In this document: positions 7,289 to 60,588 of the stretch, one piece after another
Numbering within the stretch: position 1 is the stretch's first letter
Layout: the number at the start of each line of letters is the position of its first letter
From: Podarcis bocagei
Taxonomy: Eukaryota
DNA length: 64,000 nucleotides
Direction: 5' to 3' (one strand)
Assembly: GCA_964188305.1 (NCBI GenBank)
Contig: OZ076894.1
The notes under the pieces: model-generated
Seen by the model: the letters and a program-made list of their open reading frames with translations, nothing else
Databases searched by the model: none
Told to the model about the DNA's origin: nothing
Position numbers and translations under genes: made by a program

Positions 7289-8491
7289 GCTTTGGTGGTT
7301 GAGCAGGTGGTTGCTGAACAACTCCAGGCACGCCTGGAAGATACAGACCATTTGGATCCCTTCCAGTCGGGATTCAGGCCTCATCATGGGACTGAAACTG
7401 CCTTGGTCGCACTGGTTGATGATCTCCGGCGGGCTAGGGACAAAGGTGAGAGCTGTTTCCTAGTTCTGCTGGATCTCTCAGCGGCGTTTGATACCATCGA
7501 CCATAACATCCTTCTGGACCGTCTTGAGGGGCTGGGAGCTGGGGGCACTGTTATACAGTGGTTCCGCTCCTTCCTCCTGGGCCGTGTTCAGAAAGTGGTG
7601 GTGGGGGATGAGTGTTCAGACCCCTGGGCCCTCACTTGTGGGGTGCCTCAGGGTTCCGTCCTCTCCCCCATACTTTTTAACATCTATATGAAGCCACTGG
7701 GAGAGATCATCAGGGGGTTTGGACTGGGTGTTCATCAATATGCAGATGATACCCAGCTCTACCTCTCTTTCAAATCAGAACCAGTGAAGGCGGTGAAGGT
7801 CCTGTGTGAGTGCCTGGAGGCGGTTGGAGGATGGATGGCGGCTAATGGATTGAGGTTGAATCCTGACAAGACAGAAGTACTGTTTTTGCAGGACAGGAGG
7901 CAGGCAGGTGTGGAGGACTCCCTGGTCCTGAATGGGGTAACTGTGCCACTACAGGACCAGGTGCGCAGCCTGGGAGTCATTTTGGACTCACAGCTGTCCA
8001 TGGAGGCGCAGGTCAATTCTGTGTCCAGGGCAGCTGTCTACCAGCTCCATCTGGTACGCAGGCTAAGATTCTATCTGCCTGCGGATTGTCTCACCAGAGT
8101 GGTGCATGCTCTAGTTATCTCCTGCTTGGACTACTGCAATGCGCTCTATGTGGGGCTACCTTTGAAGGTGACCCAGAAACTACAACTAATCCAGAATGCG
8201 GCAGCTAGACTGGTGAGGTCCAGCACCGAGGGCCTTCTGGTGGTTCCCTCACTGCGAGAAGCAAAGTTACAGGAACCAGGCAGAGGGCCTTCTCGGTAGT
8301 GGCGCCTGTCCTGTGGAACACCCTCCCACCAGATGTCAAAGGAAAAAACAACTACCAGACTTTTAGGAGACAACTGAAGGCAGCCCTGTTTAGGGAAACT
8401 TTTAATATCTGAAGAACTATTGTATTTTAATATTTTGTTGGAAGCTGCCCAGAGTGGCTGGGAGGACCCAGCTAGATGGGCATGGTATGTA

Positions 8492-13176: not shown

Positions 13177-13418
13177 CAGTGGTACCTTGGCTTAAGAACT
13201 TAATTCATTCCAGAGGTCTGTTCTTAACCTGAAACTGTTCTTAACCTGAGGTACCACTTTAGCTTATGGGGCCTTCCGCTGCTGCCACGCCACTGCTGCA
13301 CAATTTCTCTTCTCATCCTGAAGCAAAGTTCTTAACCCAAGGTACTATTTCTGGGTTAGCGGAGTCTGTAACCTGGAGTGTCTGTAACCTGAAGTGTCTG
13401 TAACCCGAGGTACCACTG
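13177..13418. mobile_element. Tc1/pogo (Tigger-like) MITE, family M1
   Basis: TIR CAGTGGTACC...GGTACCACTG, TA TSD on both sides; near-identical copies at 19260, 28685, 54947, 60347. Confidence 0.9.
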
Positions 13419-19259: not shown

Positions 19260-19501
19260 CAGTGGTACCTCGGGTTAAGTACTTAATTCGTTACAGAGCT
19301 CCGTTCTTAACCTGAAACTGTTCTTAACCTGAAGCACCACTTTAGCTAATGGGGCGTCCCGCTGCTGCCACGCCACCGGAGCACGATTTCTGTTCTCATC
19401 CTGAAGCAAAGTTCTTAACCCGAGGTACTATTTCTGGGTTAGCGGAGTCTGTAACCTGAAGCATCTGTAACCTGAAGCGTATGTAACCTGAGGTACCACT
19501 G
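19260..19501. mobile_element. Tc1/pogo MITE M1
   Basis: CAGTGGTACCTC TIRs, TA TSD. Confidence 0.92.
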
Positions 19502-27975: not shown

Positions 27976-28820
27976 AATCTAATGCAGTAAATGGCAACGA
28001 TCTTCCAGTCAATTAGTATATGTCCCCCCTTAGCACTGCTTTTGGATTCATGCAGTGATTATTAACCTGTTGGGAATAGATTTTTAATATCTGGTTTCAA
28101 TTTTGATTTAATCCACATAATATCATGTGTCGTCCCTTGTTCTTAATATGCTTTCTGTTTTATCTTTTTCTGTGAAGGCTTCATTTTTTATGGTTAAGCA
28201 ATGCAACTTTTATTTGGTTTTATTGTTTCCATTCTTGTCATCGTTGGTTAGTATCAGGTCTTCCAATGGCAGCACCACAAAAGAAAACCAAAGGCTTTGC
28301 AGTTTTCTTTGCTGCTAAGAACCAGTTGCCTTTGGTAGAAGCAGGAAAGGTTTCTCTATCTTAGAACCTCCTTCCGCTGCCGACAGTCAATGTTCACCAA
28401 CTATAAAACACTAGTTAGGTTTATTTTCTTTCCCTGAAGTTTTTCCATCAATGCTAGTGACTGTTAAAACAAGCTTGTCAATAGCTGACTTTTCTAGAAC
28501 ACAGCAAATATTTTGCCAGACAGCAACTCCTCAAGCTCATTAAAATTAAGGAAACCAAGCCATATAATCAGATGAGAGCCTCTTGCAAGACCTTAGCTCT
28601 TCTACAAGAAAATAGATAGATACTTCTGTAAAATCAGCTCCCTAGAAAGGTGGGAAGAACAATGCCTTTGGGCCTAACACATTACCGTGGTACCTCGGGT
28701 TACATACGCTTCAGATTACAGACGCTTCAGGTTACAGACTCTGCTAACCCAGAAACAGTACCTCGGGTTAAGAACTTTACTTCAGGATAAGAACAGAAAT
28801 TGAAACCTATTCCCTGGTTT

Positions 28821-28832
28821 CAAAATGGCGAC
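28821..28832 (+). promoter_or_regulatory. YY1-like site (CAAAATGGCGAC) at the LINE 5' end, putative internal Pol II promoter
   Basis: Matches the AANATGGCG YY1 consensus ~20 nt inside the 5' end, the same position as in mammalian L1 promoters. Confidence 0.45.
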
Positions 28833-29867
28833 GAAGGTAGCAGCCTAGTTAACCTCGTCTGCCTTTAGATAAAGTTTTAAGTAGTTTTAAGTAGTTTTTC
28901 AAACCCTTTGGGGGTTTATCTTTTAATTCTAATGATTTAGTGGCTGTACTATCTCCTCAACACTGCCTCCGCTTTTCTTAGCATTAGCGTTTTATTGTTT
29001 TATTGTTTTATCACCGGACTCGAGCTTTAGCCTTGCTGCCTTGTCGCACCCCCCGCCGTACTTTGGTGCTGTGGAGCTGAGTAATCTCCTGAAACGAGTG
29101 AGAGGGGAAGGAAAAGAGGCCTGGCCTGACTCCCCCGTCGTGAAGGGACCCCCGTTACTGGGAAAGGAATAACTCAAGGTGGGTGATTGGAAACACCGTA
29201 AAATGGGGTTGAAACAAGCCCCCTTCCGAGTCCTGCCGGAATGAGTAAGAGCGTCTTCAGCAAATTAGGCTGATAAGAGGCGCAGCTTGGAAAAACCCCC
29301 AGCTTCTATCAGCTTCTATCAGTAAAAGGAAACTGGGAGCCGACGGAAGAACTCTCAAGCTTTCCTCCCTTCCTTCCCTTTCCAGCCCCACCAAAACTGC
29401 CTTAATAACTCACGGATAGTATTCCCTCTTGGGACTGATAGTTTCTCTCCCTCGAAGCTCCGGAGCAGCACGCACAAGTGACCTGCAGGAAGGTGGCTGT
29501 TAGACTCTGGAACAGATCCTGAGACCCAAGCACCTTATTAAAACCTACACCCTACAACAGAAGAGCCATTTCTTTCTCCTCTTTTTCCTCTTTGTTCAGC
29601 AAGGCAGTTTTTTTTAATTCCGCTCTTTTACTGCATTAGCGCTTCAACATTTTTATTACTTTTTACCTTTTTACCTCCTGGCACCTTTTTACCTTCTGGT
29701 ACCTATATTTATGCAGAGAAACATATTCAGACTCAGTGCTCGCTGACGAGCTAAGCAGGAGAAAGCTGCAGATACACCCCTACTCTACCACCGGCCCTGC
29801 AAATTAGGAAGAAACACTTGGGGACAACTGGCTCTCTAATTGGAAGACAACTACCCAACTACCCAAC

Positions 29868-31895
29868 ATGGTCCTCACCAGAAAGATATGTAAGGAGTTG
29901 GGTATTTTGCCAGAATCGTCACTCAACCCCCCGGGACCTGGAAAGAGACAAAGTAAAATTATAAATTATTTCCCTAAGAGGGAGGAGCGCATGAGTGAAC
30001 AAACTGAACTAATTATTGATGAAGTCACTCCTCCCCCCCTTACTCATCCTGACTGGTCACACTACTCCAAAGAGTTTCAACAAAACTCTGGAAACACAAG
30101 CTTTCCAAGAAGCTTGGCGCTAGAACTAGCCCTAGCGGAGAAACCTGAGGAAAATGTTTCTGTCATCAATAATCAGCGGCCTCCGGCAGAATTAACAACA
30201 TTCCATCAAGACCAGGCGCCCACTTTTAAGTATACTCAAACTGAACTGAGTGATGGCCTCTTTCAGGTCCACCTCCAAGACATAAATACAGACCTTTCCA
30301 ACATAAAAAATTATTTGACAATAACAAATGGGTTATTGTTGACCCTTGTGGAAAACCTTATCCCTCAACCAAAAGAGACAATAGCAACGGATGCACCCCA
30401 AATGCATAAACCAGTAGGACCTGCGAAGATGAGACAAGCAGTAACAACCAAGAAATTACAAAAAAATAGACCAAAAGCCAGGGAAAAGAAAACTAAGAAC
30501 ATTAAAACAACAAGGAAAATAAAGACAAGTCGACATAACCAATGGCAGAAATTATTCAAACTACTTCCATCGGACCCAAACAAATCTGCTGTACGAGATA
30601 AAAAAGAGAAAGGCAAGAAGGGGAAAAAGAAGTCATCGCCACAGCTAATGGCTAAGGAGGTATCTCCGAACCGGAGTTTAGAACTAAATGGGAGGATGGA
30701 AGCAACGCCCCAGAGCCCTGATAATAGGTCACTCAGTGAACTTGACATTGGGGGTGAAGCGGTACCTAACAATGAAGGCAGCGAACCACCTAGCAAACTG
30801 AGAAATGGGGACAATGCAACGCTCAATCGCGATGACAACACTATACAAGATGAGCAAGCCTTTACTCAGACAAGATGCTGGAAGCTGATCTTAAATCCCC
30901 AAAAATTGGTATTTACAAACTTCCCAAAACCAAAGGGCTTTCTTACAGGGAAAGATCGAAGAATGAGCTCCTTGAACATTCTGAATGATATACTGCCAGG
31001 CGCAGTAAGGCCAAATGATATTACTTCTGTAGATTATTTGCATCATGATGGCTGTTCTGTGAGAGCAATGATCACATTTAGAGACCTGAACCTGGCCAAG
31101 TTTATTTACAGATCAAGATATATATTCTTAAAGGCCCAGATACAAATTCTCAGATTTTTTGAAAATAAGGCACCACTGAATCCCCTTCTGGAAGCTAAGC
31201 CCGCAAACCTTAGTAAGGAGAAACAACCTCCCAAAACCCAGCCTGGTCCCCAGAAACAAGTGCCTCTAAACCTAAAAAGGAAAGACGTTCACCTGCAAGA
31301 TCCACAATTCCAAGCGAACGAAGATGAGGACCCCTTCTCTGTGGAAGAAAATACCTTAATCAGGCAATTTTGCCAATTTCCATCTTCAATACAAACTGAA
31401 ATATTAGAAAGATTAGACTTGCTAAGAATTAAGCTGGCTGGGAGAGATATAAATAAGGAAATCAATGTGGCCGCCCACAAAAAGGACCAGACTCTCTTTA
31501 ATTTGAACTCTATACAAGAACAAAACCCGGCGGCCTGTCGGCCACGTTACCTTCAGACAATGGCTGAGATTAATCTGCTCCCAATCAAGGAGGCCCAGTA
31601 CACCGAAGAGTACACTACATCACCTCCAATAGGGAGATCCATCCCCAAGGTGAACTCACCAGGCTCTTGGGACAAACTGAGGTACCTAGATGAGGCAGAG
31701 TTAGGCCACAATCAAGTCCCGGAAAAACACCTACAGAAAGAGATAACATACTTCAAAGGCCCGGTGACCACTAATGTCAGTATTCAACACTTACCAGCCG
31801 AAGCTATAGAACATTTGGCCAGTTTGCCATGCCCGGAAAACAATGGGCCGGCTCATAAAAGTGTAATCCCTAAAAGTTCCTTGGGAAATAATTGA
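29868..31895 (+). CDS. LINE ORF1 protein (675 aa): putative coiled coil, Lys-rich region, RRM/CTD-like domain
   Basis: Uninterrupted ORF between the 5' UTR and ORF2. Heptad-like LQDINTDLSNIKNYL; KLVFTNFP...RAMITFRD...IQILRFF resembles the ORF1p RRM-CTD pattern (inference). Confidence 0.85.
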   Translation: MVLTRKICKELGILPESSLNPPGPGKRQSKIINYFPKREERMSEQTELIIDEVTPPPLTHPDWSHYSKEFQQNSGNTSFPRSLALELALAEKPEENVSVINNQRPPAELTTFHQDQAPTFKYTQTELSDGLFQVHLQDINTDLSNIKNYLTITNGLLLTLVENLIPQPKETIATDAPQMHKPVGPAKMRQAVTTKKLQKNRPKAREKKTKNIKTTRKIKTSRHNQWQKLFKLLPSDPNKSAVRDKKEKGKKGKKKSSPQLMAKEVSPNRSLELNGRMEATPQSPDNRSLSELDIGGEAVPNNEGSEPPSKLRNGDNATLNRDDNTIQDEQAFTQTRCWKLILNPQKLVFTNFPKPKGFLTGKDRRMSSLNILNDILPGAVRPNDITSVDYLHHDGCSVRAMITFRDLNLAKFIYRSRYIFLKAQIQILRFFENKAPLNPLLEAKPANLSKEKQPPKTQPGPQKQVPLNLKRKDVHLQDPQFQANEDEDPFSVEENTLIRQFCQFPSSIQTEILERLDLLRIKLAGRDINKEINVAAHKKDQTLFNLNSIQEQNPAACRPRYLQTMAEINLLPIKEAQYTEEYTTSPPIGRSIPKVNSPGSWDKLRYLDEAELGHNQVPEKHLQKEITYFKGPVTTNVSIQHLPAEAIEHLASLPCPENNGPAHKSVIPKSSLGNN

Positions 31896-34800
31896 CAAAG
31901 ATCAGACCAGAGGCAAACACCAGCCGGCTCCCTATCTCCGCGGAAATTCGACACCATTAGAAACAAACAGGCTCAATCCTTACCTACAAACCAAGCAAAA
32001 GCAGTTCTTTCCCTGAAAGGCGCATCCAACCCACCCCAGAGCCTTAAAATTGTCTCCTGGAATGTTAACGGCTGGGCGACAAAGCAAATGGATCCTGAGG
32101 CAATAAACTTTATCTCTTCTTTTGACATTGTGTGCCTCCAAGAGACCTGGTCCCAACAAAGTATCACTCTCCCATATTATTGTTCCTTTAGCTCCTGTGC
32201 TCGCAAACTAGCTAACAGGGGTCGCCCTCAAGTTGGCCTCGCCTGTCTTATCTCAACCAGCTTATCCCTCACTATCTGCGAGGAACTTAAATCTTCCCCT
32301 TACTTTCTCACTATAAAGATCCACCTTCCAAAGACCAAAAGCCCATGGTTGATAACTACAGTATATCTGCCTCCAGCAATTAATGATTCCGACCGTAATG
32401 AAAGGTGGTCTGAACTTTCGTCTTGGCTTCATGACCTTCAAACAACTAACCCAGGACTTCCTCAAATCCTCTTAGGTGACTTTAATGCAAGAATAGGTCC
32501 CAACGACGATGCTATATTATCTTCCGCAGCACTTCTGGACAATCCCCTGCAGCACCCCTGGGGATATAGATGCTCTCTTGATCCCATAACAAATGCGTCG
32601 GGGAGGCTGTTGGCCCAATTGGCCATCGAAAACGATCTTTGCATTGCAAATGGCAACGTCACTCCCTTGTCCTCGCAGCAGTTAACGTGCATTTCTTCCC
32701 GGGGGACCAGTGTTGTCGACTACATTCTATTGACGCCGGGGCTATTCTCAATTTCTACAAAAATGGAAGTGGCTGAATATTTTGGTGGTGACCACCTTCC
32801 ATTGACTTTAATGTTAAGCCTAATAGAGCCATTCTCAGTCCCCTCGAACTATAGTTCCACCGTACAAAGCTACCCTGTATATAAAACAAAGAAATGGACA
32901 AGCCTCAGCTCCTCTCTTGCCCTGGACATACAAAAATCACTTGATATGCCTACAGTTCTTTCTGACTCAATTCCGCCCGCTGACCAATACCGGAAATTAA
33001 TTGATGCTTTTTCAACAACTTACATAACCATTACCTCGCCTACCCACCAACGCTTCTTCTCCGAATCACCCTGGTTTGACAAGGAATGTAAAGTCCTAAG
33101 AAGGCGAATTAGGAAAATGGTCAGAATCATCAAATTTTCCAACGACCCCCAAACCCGTGCAGAGCTTCTAGTTACTAAAAGGACATACAGAAACATGATT
33201 CATTGCAAGAAACAGCAACACATCCTTGAGGCTTGGTCCACTCTTCGTTCAGCTGTAGAGAGGCATGACTCCCGCTCCTTTTGGCGCTTAGTTAGGCCTT
33301 CGGCACCACCCAATTCAGCTATCCTGATTTCCGCTGACGAATGGATCGCTTATTATTCGGCCAGTTTCGCTTCTCCAAATAATCTTACAGATCACCTTCA
33401 ATCCCCGTCGGACCTCTGTTCCCGTTCTCCTAGCTCCACCTCCTCAGTAAATTTTACCTCAACCCGCATCTTCAACATCATAATGTCCATGCGTAGGAAT
33501 AAGGCCCCCGGCCCAGACATGGTCCCGTTGGACCTTTTCCTGACTGATCCTCTTTGGTGGAGTGAACAGCTGACTTCTGTATTCACCGCTATCTCCTCCG
33601 CGTTAGACATCCCCGACTCCTGGAGAGAAGCTACAATAGTCCCGATTTTCAAAGGCGGCCAGCCAAACATCCCTAGGAACTATCGCCCCATCAGCTTACT
33701 ATCTATTCCGGGGAAAATATTTGCTGCTGTCTTACTGGAAGAACTTCTTTCATGGGTCCATGAGAGAAACATTCTACCGCCAGAACAGATTGGCTTCCGG
33801 AAGTCAGCATCAACCATGGACCACTGTCTAACTCTTTATCACCTTGCCAGTAAATACACTGCACCAAGGCAAGGCCACCTGTTTGCCGCTTTCATGGACC
33901 TGGAGGCCGCCTTTGATTCCATTCCTAGACAGAGATTATGGTCCAAACTTGCCCATTTGGGAATTGATCCACACCTCCTTTCCCTAATTATTTCCCTTTA
34001 TTCAAACACCACAGCTCGCGTTCGAATTGGTCCCAATGGCTACCTTACCACCCCATTCCCAACGGCCAGGGGCGTCCGACAAGGTTGTCTCTTGGCCCCT
34101 TTACTGTTTAATCTTTATCTTCATGACGCCCTTTCCCCTTTGAAGCTAGCAACTAAGTACCCTCCTCACTTAGCAGGTCACCCCGTTGCTTCCCTTTTCT
34201 ATGCGGATGATGCCGTCATCTTATCCAGAACAGCTGCGGACCTAGCAAATGCAGTTAATGCATTTATCGCCTATTGTAAGGTGGAAGCTCTTAATATTAA
34301 TTATAAAAAATCGAAAGTTCTCCACTTCACTCGTTCCCGCAAACTCAAGCTGGAGCCGCTTAAGATCACAGGTGGCTACTTAGAAAAGGTAAAAGCCTTT
34401 AAATATCTAGGCTTAATATTTACTTATAATCTCTCCTGGACCACCCATCTACAATCTGCCTCTCTTGCTGAAACTACAACCTCTAATGCCATTGTCCAAT
34501 TTTATCACCAGAAGGGCGGCAAACACCTTCCAGCAGCAATTCAAATGTTTAATGCCAAAGTTGTCCCTAAACTATTATATGGCTGCGAAGTATGGACTAC
34601 AGCAATATCAGGTAACTTGGATCGCCCACTTCACATGTTTCTGAGATCTCTTTCCGGCGTCCCAAGATGTGTCTCAGGTGCAGCCTTACGTCTTGAGTTC
34701 GCCCAGCCCTCAATTGTAAAACGAGCATGGAGTCGAGCCATTTCCTACAGCTCCCACCTACTACCATCGGATGCTCGAATCAGAGGTGGTTTCTCCAATC

Positions 34801-35405
34801 TGATCCTAAGAGATACTCATAATTCTCCTTGGAAAACTACAATTAATCTCAAATTCCGCTCTCTTCTCAATTTGAACCGCAAAACTGTTTTTAATTTAGA
34901 GTGTATAAGCCCGGTAGCCCTACCTCTAATCAAAAAGAAGCTGCAGCAACTTGACTTCTCTAACACAGCTTCCCATGCAAGAGGGCCGTGTTCAGGCTTA
35001 GCCCTAGCTATTCCACCCCCTGAAGGGATCCCTCTATACTGCTTTACAATTCCTTCGGAGGCTAAACGAAGGGCCTTTACCTGTGCCCGTCTCAACTCTT
35101 TTCCTACAGCAGTTCTGTCGGGTCGTTACTCCAGAGTCCCCAGCGCAAATAGAACATGCTCCTGCAATGACACGGTTCTGGAGACTATGGAACATGTAAT
35201 GCTCTTCTGTCCCAACTGGACAGATGAAAGATCTCGGTTCCTAACCCCTCTCGTGAACAAGCTTCATCTCCCAATCCAGCCTTGGATAGTGTCCCTTCTT
35301 CTGCAGGATTCTGACTGTTGGATTACCGAGATGACAGCTAATTTCCTGCTTAGTGTGATGAAGAGGAAAGCGGCACCAACTCCTTCCTCAATACCACAGA
35401 TGTAG
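31896..35405 (+). CDS. LINE ORF2: APE endonuclease + reverse transcriptase + C-terminal zinc-binding motif (1169 codons open; first ATG only at 32088)
   Basis: APE motifs SWNVNG, CLQETW, VYLPP, GDFNAR, VDYI, GDHLP. RT motifs KAPGPD, YRPISLL, QIGFR, FMDLEAAFD, GVRQGC, YADD, FKYLG. C-terminal CSC..H...C. Confidence 0.95.
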   Translation, partial: QRSDQRQTPAGSLSPRKFDTIRNKQAQSLPTNQAKAVLSLKGASNPPQSLKIVSWNVNGWATKQMDPEAINFISSFDIVCLQETWSQQSITLPYYCSFSSCARKLANRGRPQVGLACLISTSLSLTICEELKSSPYFLTIKIHLPKTKSPWLITTVYLPPAINDSDRNERWSELSSWLHDLQTTNPGLPQILLGDFNARIGPNDDAILSSAALLDNPLQHPWGYRCSLDPITNASGRLLAQLAIENDLCIANGNVTPLSSQQLTCISSRGTSVVDYILLTPGLFSISTKMEVAEYFGGDHLPLTLMLSLIEPFSVPSNYSSTVQSYPVYKTKKWTSLSSSLALDIQKSLDMPTVLSDSIPPADQYRKLIDAFSTTYITITSPTHQRFFSESPWFDKECKVLRRRIRKMVRIIKFSNDPQTRAELLVTKRTYRNMIHCKKQQHILEAWSTLRSAVERHDSRSFWRLVRPSAPPNSAILISADEWIAYYSASFASPNNLTDHLQSPSDLCSRSPSSTSSVNFTSTRIFNIIMSMRRNKAPGPDMVPLDLFLTDPLWWSEQLTSVFTAISSALDIPDSWREATIVPIFKGGQPNIPRNYRPISLLSIPGKIFAAVLLEELLSWVHERNILPPEQIGFRKSASTMDHCLTLYHLASKYTAPRQGHLFAAFMDLEAAFDSIPRQRLWSKLAHLGIDPHLLSLIISLYSNTTARVRIGPNGYLTTPFPTARGVRQGCLLAPLLFNLYLHDALSPLKLATKYPPHLAGHPVASLFYADDAVILSRTAADLANAVNAFIAYCKVEALNINYKKSKVLHFTRSRKLKLEPLKITGGYLEKVKAFKYLGLIFTYNLSWTTHLQSASLAETTTSNAIVQFYHQKGGKHLPAAIQMFNAKVVPKLLYGCEVWTTAISGNLDRPLHMFLRSLSGVPRCVSGAALRLEFAQPSIVKRAWSRAISYSSHLLPSDARIRGGFSNLILRDTHNSPWKTTINLKFRSLLNLNRKTVFNLECISPVALPLIKKKLQQLDFSNTASHARGPCSGLALAIPPPEGIPLYCFTIPSEAKRRAFTCARLNSFPTAVLSGRYSRVPSANRTCSCNDTVLETMEHVMLFCPNWTDERSRFLTPLVNKLHLPIQPWIVSLLLQDSDCWITEMTANFLLSVMKRKAAPTPSSIPQM

Positions 35406-37257
35406 TCGATACGCCGCACAATCGAACCTGTTTTTTGTATTCTCTGTCACTCAATGTTTTAAATCTCCCGTTACCTTTGTTATCCCCATTTTCTCAAAGT
35501 ATTCGCCCAGAACGGCATACACTTTTATCTCCCCACCCCCATTTTATGTTGTTATTTCTATGTATATTATGCTATGGCCGCATGGCTAATGCAATAAAAT
35601 CATTATAACAGAAATCGCGTGGCGGCAGTGCAGCGGCAGTAGGAGGCTCCATAAGCTAAAGTGGTACTTCAGGTTAAGAACAGTTTCAGGTTAAGAACGG
35701 AGCTCCAGAATGAACCCAAGGTACCACTGCACTTTAATTGCATCACTTGAAACAATGTTGATGTTGCTACAGATATTAAAATATAGCTGCCATTTTTAAT
35801 TGCCTTTTGTTTTGTCAGGGGCCAAAGTATAGGTGCAGGGGCTGGGCTAATTATTGTCAAGGAAGTAGGCAAATTTCCCTGGTTTTCAAAAGCTTGCATA
35901 AGGATATATATACACCATAACCCTCGTTGTCTATGACTGATCTGATGCTGATCTATGTCAACTTTGCGGGGATGACTACAGACCTGGTCCCCTGTCTACC
36001 CGACAGCTGTTTGAAACAGGGTTCTAAAAACTTCCTTGCACTGGGGTTTAGATTTAGGTTCAGATGGTGTCAAAACTGTAACAGGAATCTGTTCTGCATC
36101 TGCTTCAGCACTGTAATACTCCCCCCCCCCCACATCCCGCCGCCACATTTCTTTCAAGGGCAAACCCTAAGACATCTTGGAAGATGAATGTTTTCCCTTT
36201 TCATCTCAGCTGACCATTGGCCGGTACATACAGAAAATGGTGTTGGAGAATTCTGCACAGCTGTTCACACTGCGGTGAACAAGAGGACAAAATCGTTCAA
36301 GGAATCAGCTTCCAGCCACTTCACTTCCAGGCTAGAAAAAAGAGAGAAGAAAGAAGCGAGTGGCTGAGAGATCAGGGGGATGATCTGTTGCTAGCAAGGG
36401 ACTTGCAAAAAAATAAAATAAAAAATGAAGATTTTTCTTTAAGATGCAGCTGACGGCTCTCTCCTGGGTTTCCATGTTTACAATTCCAGTAGCCTGGATT
36501 TACATAATTGCAATTTCACTTCTTGCAAATATTTTGGAGATTTTGTTATGCCTGATTTTCTCAACAGCTGCTGCTTGGTGCTGAAATCTCTGCTAATTAT
36601 TTCAAACATTTAATGGGGGAAAATGCATAGCCTATTTTGATAAAATTATTACATTAAAAATTCTCATGATCTTGGAAGACAACGGCGTTTGGGAAGGGAT
36701 TTTTTTGTGTGTATGTGAGGAAGGGGTTGTTGTTGTTGCTTATCTGCTCTTGAAGAAAGGCACATGCAAAACATTTATGAAGCCAACACAGCTGCGGGGT
36801 CTACTCACCAGACCACTGCTGTCTGCTCAGTATCCTTTCTAGCTTTTTATAGATACAAGTTAAAAACACCATGAAATTTATTTCCTGTAATGATCCCAAA
36901 ATATTTACTTTAGTAAGTCAATGTTTCAGCAAAAATTGCCCAAGAATGCATGGCTAGGCAGTTCCATTGTGTCAACTTAGCACTCCCCCAACCCAAATCC
37001 AATTGTAACTCCCCCCCCCTACCAAATTATTTGGATGGCCTCTAGCTCACCTTCAATGAGGTCCTGCAGTAGCAAATGAGAAATTGCAGAAAATATTGTG
37101 CCAATGGTCCAAGATGGAGAAAGAGGAAACTCAGGGCAGTTTCCTAAACTATGTTCAGCAGTTACCGTATGTCCCAGCGTACAAGACGACTTTTTAATCC
37201 CTGGAAAATCGCTCCAAAAGTCGGGGGTTGTCTTATATGCTGGGTATACGCATTGGG

Positions 37258-54946: not shown

Positions 54947-55177
54947 CAGTGGTACCTCGGGTTAAGAACTTAATTCGTTCTGGAGGTCCGTTCTTAATCT
55001 TAAACTGTTCTTAACCTGAGGTACCACTTTAGTTAATGGGGCCTCCCACTGCAGCTGCACAATTTCTGGTCTCATCCTGAAGCAAAGTTCTTAACCCGAG
55101 GTACTATTTCTGGGTTAGCGGAGTCTGTAACCTGAAGCATATGTAACCTGAAGCATCTGTAACCCGAGGTACCACTG
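54947..55177. mobile_element. Tc1/pogo MITE M1
   Basis: CAGTGGTACCTC TIRs, TA TSD. Confidence 0.92.
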
Positions 55178-60346: not shown

Positions 60347-60588
60347 CAGTGGTACCTTGGGTTACAGACGCTTCAGGTTACAGATGATTCAGGTTACAGA
60401 CTCTGCTATCCCAGAAATAGTACCTTGGGTTAAGAACTTTGCTTCAGGATGAGAACAGAAATCGTGCTCCTGTGGCATGGTGGCAGCGGGAGGCCCCATT
60501 AGCTAAAGTGGTACCTCGGGTTAAGAACAGTTTCAGGTTAAGAACGGACCTCCAGAACGAATTAAGTTCCTAACCCGAGGTACCACTG
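60347..60588. mobile_element. Tc1/pogo MITE M1, inside an old minus-strand SINE (~60205-60630)
   Basis: CAGTGGTACC TIRs, TA TSD. Confidence 0.92.

Follow-up and report, generated by a model that had tools for sequence, protein, structure and literature searches.

How the second protein of a long interspersed nuclear element (LINE) comes to be translated is a long-standing question, and reviews call the mechanism unknown or unconventional (PMC5972666, PMC5009743, PMC3894237). The question is raised again by a LINE of about 5.9 kb within a stretch of 64,000 nucleotides (nt) from the wall lizard Podarcis bocagei (assembly GCA_964188305.1, contig OZ076894.1), the whole of which we call the window. 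The two open reading frames of this element, ORF1 and ORF2, form one frame divided by a single TGA, and no in-frame ATG lies ahead of the endonuclease domain encoded at the start of ORF2. We found ORF1, TGA and ORF2 in one frame in six related families as well. Our favored reading, to which we give a probability of roughly 0.55, is that the UGA is a programmed readthrough site, from which an ORF1-ORF2 fusion of about 1845 amino acids (aa) would be made at a low, fixed ratio.

ORF1 ends AAT AAT TGA, and past the TGA its frame runs on for 64 open codons before an in-frame ATG appears, at 32088, exactly as recorded in a first-pass annotation made from the letters of the window. The frame then stays open to the TAG at 35403-35405, 1169 codons past the TGA, and a protein in which the TGA was decoded would have 675 + 1 + 1169 = 1845 aa, the size that the annotation had estimated. 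ORF1 contains 32 ATGs, and past the stop an out-of-frame ATG comes first; therefore, neither leaky scanning nor AUG-dependent reinitiation can give an active enzyme. The closely spaced or overlapping stop and AUG of the SART1/calicivirus kind is absent, the in-frame AUG lying 64 codons on and inside the endonuclease domain. The 2A motif sought at LINE ORF2 N termini is D(V/I)ExNPGP, ahead of the endonuclease (PMC3708506), and no NPGP occurs among the 64 post-stop residues. An Rfam scan of 28500-36500, with E values up to 1, returned no selenocysteine insertion sequence and no other credible RNA family.

We gathered relatives by ORF1 and ORF2 searches and contig look-ups, which yielded full or partial elements with an ORF2 24-33% identical to that of the window. 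Seven families, the window family included, have the in-frame ORF1-TGA-ORF2 layout (Table 1). Their ORF2 proteins are 26-33% identical where measured, and in the six families with a complete ORF2 the frame past the stop is open for 1117-1169 codons. The endonuclease domain begins 0, 1, 5, 7, 9, 14 or 47 codons past the stop, and the changes in length are always multiples of three. The TGA-C of the window, which the annotation had proposed to follow through other copies and relatives, is present in all three copies of the window family; among the families the TGA is found in 7/7 and the C in 6/7. Exact CARYYA hexanucleotides (CAA-YTA) follow the TGA in three (L007/L008, L009 and L010), and L005 has TGA-CTA. 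The ORF2 stops of the same families are TAA in five cases, TAG in one and TGA in two (one-sided Fisher test of ORF1 against ORF2 stop types, ~0.006); the families are related, not independent, and this p-value, like those for the frame, is indicative and overstates independence. An endonuclease N terminus without an ATG is conserved across the clade, with an ATG 4-5 codons past the stop in L007/L008 and L011. L005 and L010 have no in-frame ATG for about 85 codons, and in L010 and L006 the first strand of the endonuclease, β1, starts 0-1 codon past the stop, and no near-cognate start there has a good context. At the level of sequence, these alignments demonstrate a single frame, a conserved stop type and 3′ context, and an endonuclease that in the window element no in-frame ATG precedes.

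One of these junctions is misplaced in the public record. The annotated ORF1 end of L006, from Rhineura floridana (LOC133384347, TGA at 8044-8046), is a premature stop in a decayed copy. Another 53 codons downstream come the conserved C-terminal motif of ORF1 and the true TGA junction, at 8203-8205, which the endonuclease follows directly.

In a maximum-likelihood tree of 16 ORF2 proteins, a single clade (support 100/99) unites the window family, L010, L011, L003, L009, L005 and L007, whose terminal branches measure 0.6-2 changes per site. L012 forms the sister group (92/93), and in the outgroup LINEs the endonuclease is preceded by a normal ATG. Not in the tree are L001 (a dead copy), the duplicates L004 and L008, the decayed L006, L016 and L021 (both under 650 aa) and L093. 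L003, in which ORF2 is in the −1 frame, is nested within the clade beside TGA families (98/98), a position that makes the in-frame TGA look ancestral and L003 derived. A frame that persisted although the spacer changed length at least five times, together with TGA in every in-frame family, C in six and CAA-YTA in three, would be difficult to account for if the stop were not decoded.

We therefore propose the following course of translation. Ribosomes would scan the mRNA from its cap as far as the ORF1 AUG, and most of them would terminate at the UGA, releasing ORF1p with its helix and RNA recognition motif (RRM)-like domain. A small, fixed fraction would decode the UGA with a near-cognate tRNA, aided by the following C and CAA. 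These ribosomes would cross the 47-codon linker, go on to translate the endonuclease and reverse transcriptase and produce the ~1845-aa fusion in the style of Gag-Pol. We infer from sequence comparison that readthrough occurs, that its rate would be low and that the fusion would be the active enzyme.

We compared the junction with the known viral and cellular readthrough signals. Stop-CARYYA is the type I signal of tobamoviruses and works with UGA too, while UGA-CUA and UGA-CGG are type II; UAG-CAA-CUA is listed for Providence virus, and alphaviruses have UGA-CUA as their type II context (PMC3542737). In a reporter with the OPRL1 context, CARYYA gave ~15% readthrough after UGA or UAG and much less after UAA; all six of its positions matter, and CARNBA is a yeast variant (PMC4132726). 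L007/L008, L009 and L010 carry the type I signal. The window, with UGA-CAA-AGA, carries neither this signal nor type II (UGA-CGG or UGA-CUA with a stem-loop about 8 nt on) nor type III (UAG-G with a compact 3′ pseudoknot), and only the CAA of CARYYA matches there, as had been noted at the outset. The efficiency of readthrough in the window family may be lower.

The first-pass annotation had also suggested, as a weak possibility, that a long-range stem of 7 bp might stimulate readthrough, and this part of the proposal did not survive. The two arms exist and pair in the minimum-energy fold, but about one such pair per 200 nt is expected by chance. The fold is no better than that of shuffled sequences (z = +0.7), the arms are invariant and so leave no variation by which to judge covariation, and one of them coincides with Asn-Gly-Trp codons. 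Of 200 shuffles of the 100 nt from the stop (31893-31992), 196 fold better than the real sequence (z = +1.7), which is unusually unstructured as judged with a tool that cannot predict pseudoknots. L005 alone among the relatives folds better than its shuffles (z = −2.4).

Several observations weigh against readthrough. Neither the 216-nt fold (z = +0.7) nor the 100-nt fold (z = +1.7) reveals downstream structure, and the CAA AGA of the window is half of CARYYA. The families that share the TGA also share ancestry, as noted above for the statistics. Two more distant relatives, in frame and without an ATG, do not have the leaky UGA-C: L022/L067, from a metagenome, has TAG GAT (L022:3950-3952), and L093 has TAA GGG (L093:1525-1527). 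In most of the remaining relatives from metagenomes, a few codons separate an ordinary ATG from the endonuclease, and this ATG usually follows a TAA. The ATGs 4-5 codons past the stop in L007/L008 and L011 fit reinitiation. The 47-codon linker evolves in a near-neutral manner, as is expected of noncoding sequence too: between the window copy and L002, which represent two subfamilies differing by ~9% in the compared region, its ratio of nonsynonymous to synonymous substitution rates (dN/dS) is 0.64, a figure that comes from 18 changes (6 synonymous and 12 nonsynonymous), has no power and is compatible with weak or absent constraint. Finally, ORF2 of human LINE-1 (L1) is thought to be made separately and independently of an AUG (PMC5972666, PMC5009743).

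The relation of the two frames also counts here, and the annotation had named variation in it between families as a sign against readthrough. Such variation exists in L003/L004 and L012, where ORF2 is in the −1 frame, overlaps the end of ORF1 and has no ATG before the endonuclease; the seven TGA families are all in frame. In-phase heptamers lie in both overlaps, U_UUU_UUA (of the HIV-1 type) at L003:2288-2294 and A_AAA_AAG at L012:1371-1377. The background of in-phase X_XXY_YYZ heptamers is about 1% of codons, and one per overlap arises by chance with p ~0.3 each, so we downgraded them as proof of frameshifting. The lack of an ATG together with the heptamers suggests that L003 and L012 fit a theme of recoding rather than refute it.

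Part of this evidence favors the strongest competing explanation, AUG-independent termination-reinitiation, to which we give a clearly lower probability than to readthrough. Here ribosomes or 40S subunits would stop at the UGA and restart nearby without an AUG, yielding a separate ORF2p; in a variant, the post-termination 80S ribosome would resume elongation in the same frame. LINEs offer precedents, which reviews describe, in the AUG-independent ORF2 of L1 and the UAAUG coupling of SART1. Reinitiation would accommodate the nearby ATGs of L007/L008 and L011 and tolerate the ATG-less TAA-G of L093, the TAG-G of L022 and the −1 frame of L003 and L012; in the window itself, an AUU in strong context lies 4 codons before the catalytic Asn. 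Reinitiation needs no frame relation, yet the frame was kept over the spacer changes and seven of nine ATG-less families are in frame. It also leaves unexplained why TGA-C and CARYYA hexanucleotides are conserved at a stop when the ORF2 stops are mostly TAA. L010 and L006 leave it little room, β1 following the stop so closely without a well-placed near-cognate start, and reinitiation after a long upstream ORF has been judged highly improbable for ORF2 synthesis (PMC3894237). Of the readthrough interpretation as first put forward, the shared TGA and the layout common to the clade stand and the stem does not.

We then located the start of the endonuclease. Pfam Exo_endo_phos (PF03372) covers post-stop residues 53-289, with profile position 1 at residue 53, 12 residues before the Met. 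In a phmmer search against PDB the endonuclease region matched nothing; a profile of 11 related endonuclease domains did find matches, in the solved structures of the human L1 endonuclease and of ExoIII-type enzymes, with E values of 1e-21 to 1e-17. This profile sets L13-N14 of L1 against the invariant Trp-Asn of KIVSWNVNG, and ExoIII-type chains start exactly at the strand carrying the equivalent of KIVSWNVNG. Both the beginning of the domain and the Asn precede the ATG at 32088, and an ORF2p started there would therefore lack strand β1 and the catalytic Asn; the Pfam and family-profile alignments thereby bear out the earlier remark that this ATG, downstream of SWNVNG, would cost the protein part of its active site.

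A truncated ORF2p from Met 32088, an endonuclease-defective reverse transcriptase with the upstream open frame as a relic, is nonetheless what all database gene models imply, and the ATG is conserved in the three copies of the family. We regard this as very improbable. Such a protein would be without β1 and the catalytic Asn, L005 and L010 offer no in-frame ATG within about 85 codons, and in the window an out-of-frame ATG comes first. The 51 nt from the domain start to the ATG show zero differences between the window and L002, the motif they encode is invariant across families, and the dN/dS of the endonuclease domain is 0.18. The comparison of coding sequences demonstrates that the residues upstream of the ATG are under purifying selection.

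The public records for these proteins reflect the internal Met. UniRef A0A670IUV5, from Podarcis muralis, is 99% identical and starts there. The public gene models start at the internal Met or later, are named ribonuclease H and do not include the first strand and catalytic Asn.

We next examined variation within the family. AAT AAT TGA CAA AGA is the same in the three copies (the window, L001 and L002), which are 7-10% diverged overall and one of which, L001, comes from another species, Podarcis lilfordi. None of the three has an indel or a stop in the 64 post-stop codons. Contigs of two DNA-library and two RNA-library runs, from three organisms, were checked over 31400-32600, and among variants listed at ≥10% in the four runs none affected the TGA at 31893-31895 and there were no joints. 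A private nonsense mutation was accordingly rejected as an explanation of the TGA.

That the family is extinct or the stop inactivating, with ORF2 untranslated and the conservation due to young age, is slightly less probable again than the truncated protein. The junction is known from three copies only, and L001 is dead, with a frameshift in ORF1. The same stop, however, occurs in families with an intact ORF2 and proteins only 26-33% identical, and between the two subfamilies purifying selection is apparent both in the last 78 codons of ORF1 (dN/dS 0.24) and in the endonuclease domain. The family also has a high k-mer depth in the DNA runs and is found in RNA libraries, though presence in an RNA library is no proof of transcription.

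Stop-codon editing occurs in hepatitis delta virus. Removal of the stop in a minority of transcripts here, whether through splicing or through A-to-I editing that turns UGA into UGG, is the least probable explanation of all: nothing supports it directly, even if a low level would be compatible with contigs that lose rare variants, and against it the RNA-library contigs retain the TGA (one, of 4135 nt, runs through the junction without a joint), a region less structured than its shuffles offers no predicted double-stranded substrate for editing, and the CARYYA contexts are not accounted for.

Readthrough at this junction would have close parallels in viruses. In murine leukemia virus (MLV) Gag-Pol, too, a gene for an RNA-binding structural protein is followed by one stop and an in-frame enzyme gene, and a minority of ribosomes would make the fusion. 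MLV differs in having UAG-G and a compact pseudoknot 8 nt downstream (PMC3542737), whereas the LINE has UGA-C and no detectable structure, and the LINE is unlike retroviral Gag-Pol in lacking a protease to part the fusion. The hexanucleotide of tobacco mosaic virus (UAG-CAA-UUA) is that of L010 (UGA CAA UUA), and the one of Providence virus is that of L007/L008 and L009 (UGA CAA CUA). The type I signal needs no RNA structure; its natural cases mostly have UAG, whereas the window has UGA with CAA AGA. Alphaviruses and mammalian UGA-CUAG genes such as OPRL1 share the UGA followed by C, and L005 has UGA-CUA, but in the LINE families no G follows the CUA and the extended stem-loop about 8 nt downstream of type II signals is missing.

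Other LINEs offer looser comparisons. Mammalian L1 likewise has a bicistronic mRNA and an ORF2 synthesis independent of a conventional AUG. It differs in possessing an ORF2 AUG ahead of the endonuclease and, as generally understood, in making no fusion, whereas the window LINE has a single conserved UGA-C and no such AUG. ORF1 and ORF2 of human L1 are also in frame, with in-frame stops in a 63-nt spacer. In SART1 of the silkworm, stop and start overlap (UAAUG), unlike the junctions described here, some of which have no spacer at all. The −1 frameshifting of HIV-1 at U_UUU_UUA resembles the −1-frame ORF2 of L003/L004 and L012; it is inapplicable to the in-frame element of the window, and no downstream structure was found.

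The accepted picture of LINE expression, from human L1, is of two separate proteins. For ORF2, reviews name reinitiation, UAAUG coupling, 2A peptides and, in Drosophila telomeric elements, possible frameshifting. Our full-text literature searches, from which older subscription literature was partly out of reach so that earlier suggestions may exist, found no paper on readthrough between LINE ORF1 and ORF2. An in-frame stop with proposed suppression was reportedly described by Wright et al. in 1996 in the Arabidopsis LINE Ta11-1. Retrovirus-style recoding is here proposed as a means of LINE ORF2 expression, on comparative sequence evidence. If the reading is correct, some LINEs employ the retroviral Gag-Pol strategy; the ratio of ORF1p to ORF2p would be fixed and the enzyme tied to the RNA-coating protein, which would give a simple basis for cis-preference. 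A practical consequence is that database ORF2 models of these LINEs, starting at the internal Met, are missing part of the active site.

A Pfam search of ORF1 returned no domain, and its homologues in other LINE families, Zootoca and Rhineura, are 18-36% identical. The AlphaFold model is largely disordered, with a long helix at aa 129-164 and a β-α-β-β-α-β domain at aa 346-430, to which predicted local distance difference test scores of 74-87 are confined. Foldseek searches with this domain gave, as top-probability matches, the RRM of human L1 ORF1p (2ykq, 2yko, 2ldy and 2w7a; probability 0.96-0.99), matches that are weak by E value (~0.04-0.08), with root mean square deviations of 3.1-3.9 Å. 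Near the N terminus of ORF1 lies a motif resembling the PCNA-interacting protein (PIP) box, QSKIINYF, of which Q28, K30 and I31 are invariant across 8 ORF1 homologues of different families. Judging by its match to the consensus, it may bind PCNA. In human L1, the PIP box is in ORF2p.

These observations can be joined in a wider reading, which we offer tentatively and rate as somewhat short of an even chance. A clade of vertebrate LINEs would have lost independent ORF2 initiation and come to make the enzyme solely through recoding, as a Gag-Pol-like fusion. UGA-CARYYA would be the ancestral state, some lineages would have moved to −1 frameshifting at slippery sites of the retroviral type, and the PIP-box-like motif of ORF1 would provide the fusion with a contact to PCNA. 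The switches between readthrough and frameshifting would then mirror the alternation among retroviruses.

We bounded the element by comparison with L001 and with the Logan contig L002. Homology to L001 covers 29742-35427 and 35497-35598, and the three copies part ways past ~35605; 29742 is where homology begins and may be a minimum, the true 5′ limit possibly lying further out. The positions of the features are collected in Table 1.

Table 1. Features of the Podarcis bocagei LINE, in window coordinates, followed by the ORF1-ORF2 junctions of the seven in-frame TGA families.
Feature	Position	Strand	Remarks
Full-length LINE (non-LTR retrotransposon), ~5.9 kb	29742..35607	+	Homology to Podarcis lilfordi copy L001
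5′ untranslated region	29742..29867	+	No ATG; ORF1 AUG context strong (CCCAACATGG)
ORF1, 675 aa	29868..31895	+	TGA-terminated
PIP-box-like motif QSKIINYF, ORF1 aa 28-35	29949..29972	+	Matches consensus Qxx[ILM]xx[FY][FY]
RRM/ferredoxin-like domain, ORF1 aa 346-430	30903..31157	+	AlphaFold model
In-frame TGA dividing ORF1 from ORF2, candidate recoded stop	31893..31895	+	Context AAT AAT TGA
Post-stop hexanucleotide CAA AGA	31896..31901	+	CAR of CARYYA fits, YYA does not; yeast CARNBA fits
Open linker, 47 codons, stop to endonuclease domain	31896..32036	+	Free of stops and indels in three copies
5′ arm of proposed long-range stem, CCAGCCG	31920..31926	+	Stem not supported
APE-type endonuclease domain	32037..32762	+	Family hidden Markov model begins at post-stop residue 48
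Codon of invariant catalytic Asn (L1 N14)	32061..32063	+	Ahead of first ATG in frame
First ATG after stop	32062..32064	+	Out of frame (+1); begins short ORF
3′ arm of proposed long-range stem, CGGCTGG	32069..32075	+	Within Asn-Gly-Trp codons; stem not supported
First in-frame ORF2 ATG	32088..32090	+	Start of UniRef A0A670IUV5; downstream of β1 and Asn
Codon of invariant catalytic Glu, QETW (L1 E43)	32142..32144	+
Reverse transcriptase domain	33672..34418	+	Pfam RVT_1 (PF00078), post-stop residues 593-841, E 2.5e-35
C-terminal Cys/His motif	35157..35210	+	C1088, H1100 and C1105 invariant
ORF2 stop codon TAG	35403..35405	+
3′ untranslated region	35406..35607	+	Ends ...AATAAAATCATTATAA; poly(A) run absent
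Junction, window family			TGA CAA AGA; 47 codons to endonuclease, no ATG
Junction, L005			TGA CTA AGA; 9 codons to endonuclease, no ATG
Junction, L007/L008			TGA CAA CTA; ATG 4 codons past stop
Junction, L009			TGA CAA CTA; no ATG; ORF1 tail decayed
Junction, L010			TGA CAA TTA; endonuclease immediately after stop, no ATG
Junction, L006 (Rhineura floridana)			TGA CTT CTT; endonuclease 1 codon past stop, no ATG; sole copy, decayed
Junction, L011			TGA ATT GAT; ATG 5 codons past stop

ORF2 has the features of an APE-type LINE, with an APE endonuclease at its N terminus, a reverse transcriptase in the middle and a Cys/His motif at its C terminus, and an intact, recently active element of wall lizards (Podarcis) is the best explanation of the whole. 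The first-pass annotation had labeled it RTE-X; both the CCHC motif at the C terminus and the length of ORF1, which has an RRM-like domain, speak against an RTE-type identity. A search of the ESM Atlas for the clade returned only generic RVT and Exo_endo_phos clusters and, for ORF1, weak RRM leads. Lizard L2 elements have two ORFs and subgroups ~37% identical (PMC7140322), which is compatible with the present LINE, and the 46% GC content of ORF2 does not match the 55% published for Anolis L2. No placement on contigs was obtained for the UniRef protein P0001.

No further copies of the LINE were found inside the window. The segment at 35607-35714 was considered as the tail of the LINE and rejected: the three-copy alignment shows it to be a neighboring repeat resembling a short interspersed nuclear element (SINE). 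This SINE-like repeat adjoins the 3′ end of the LINE, and further members of its family are present in the window at 13204-13316, 19296-19394, 54974-55060 and 60482-60561.

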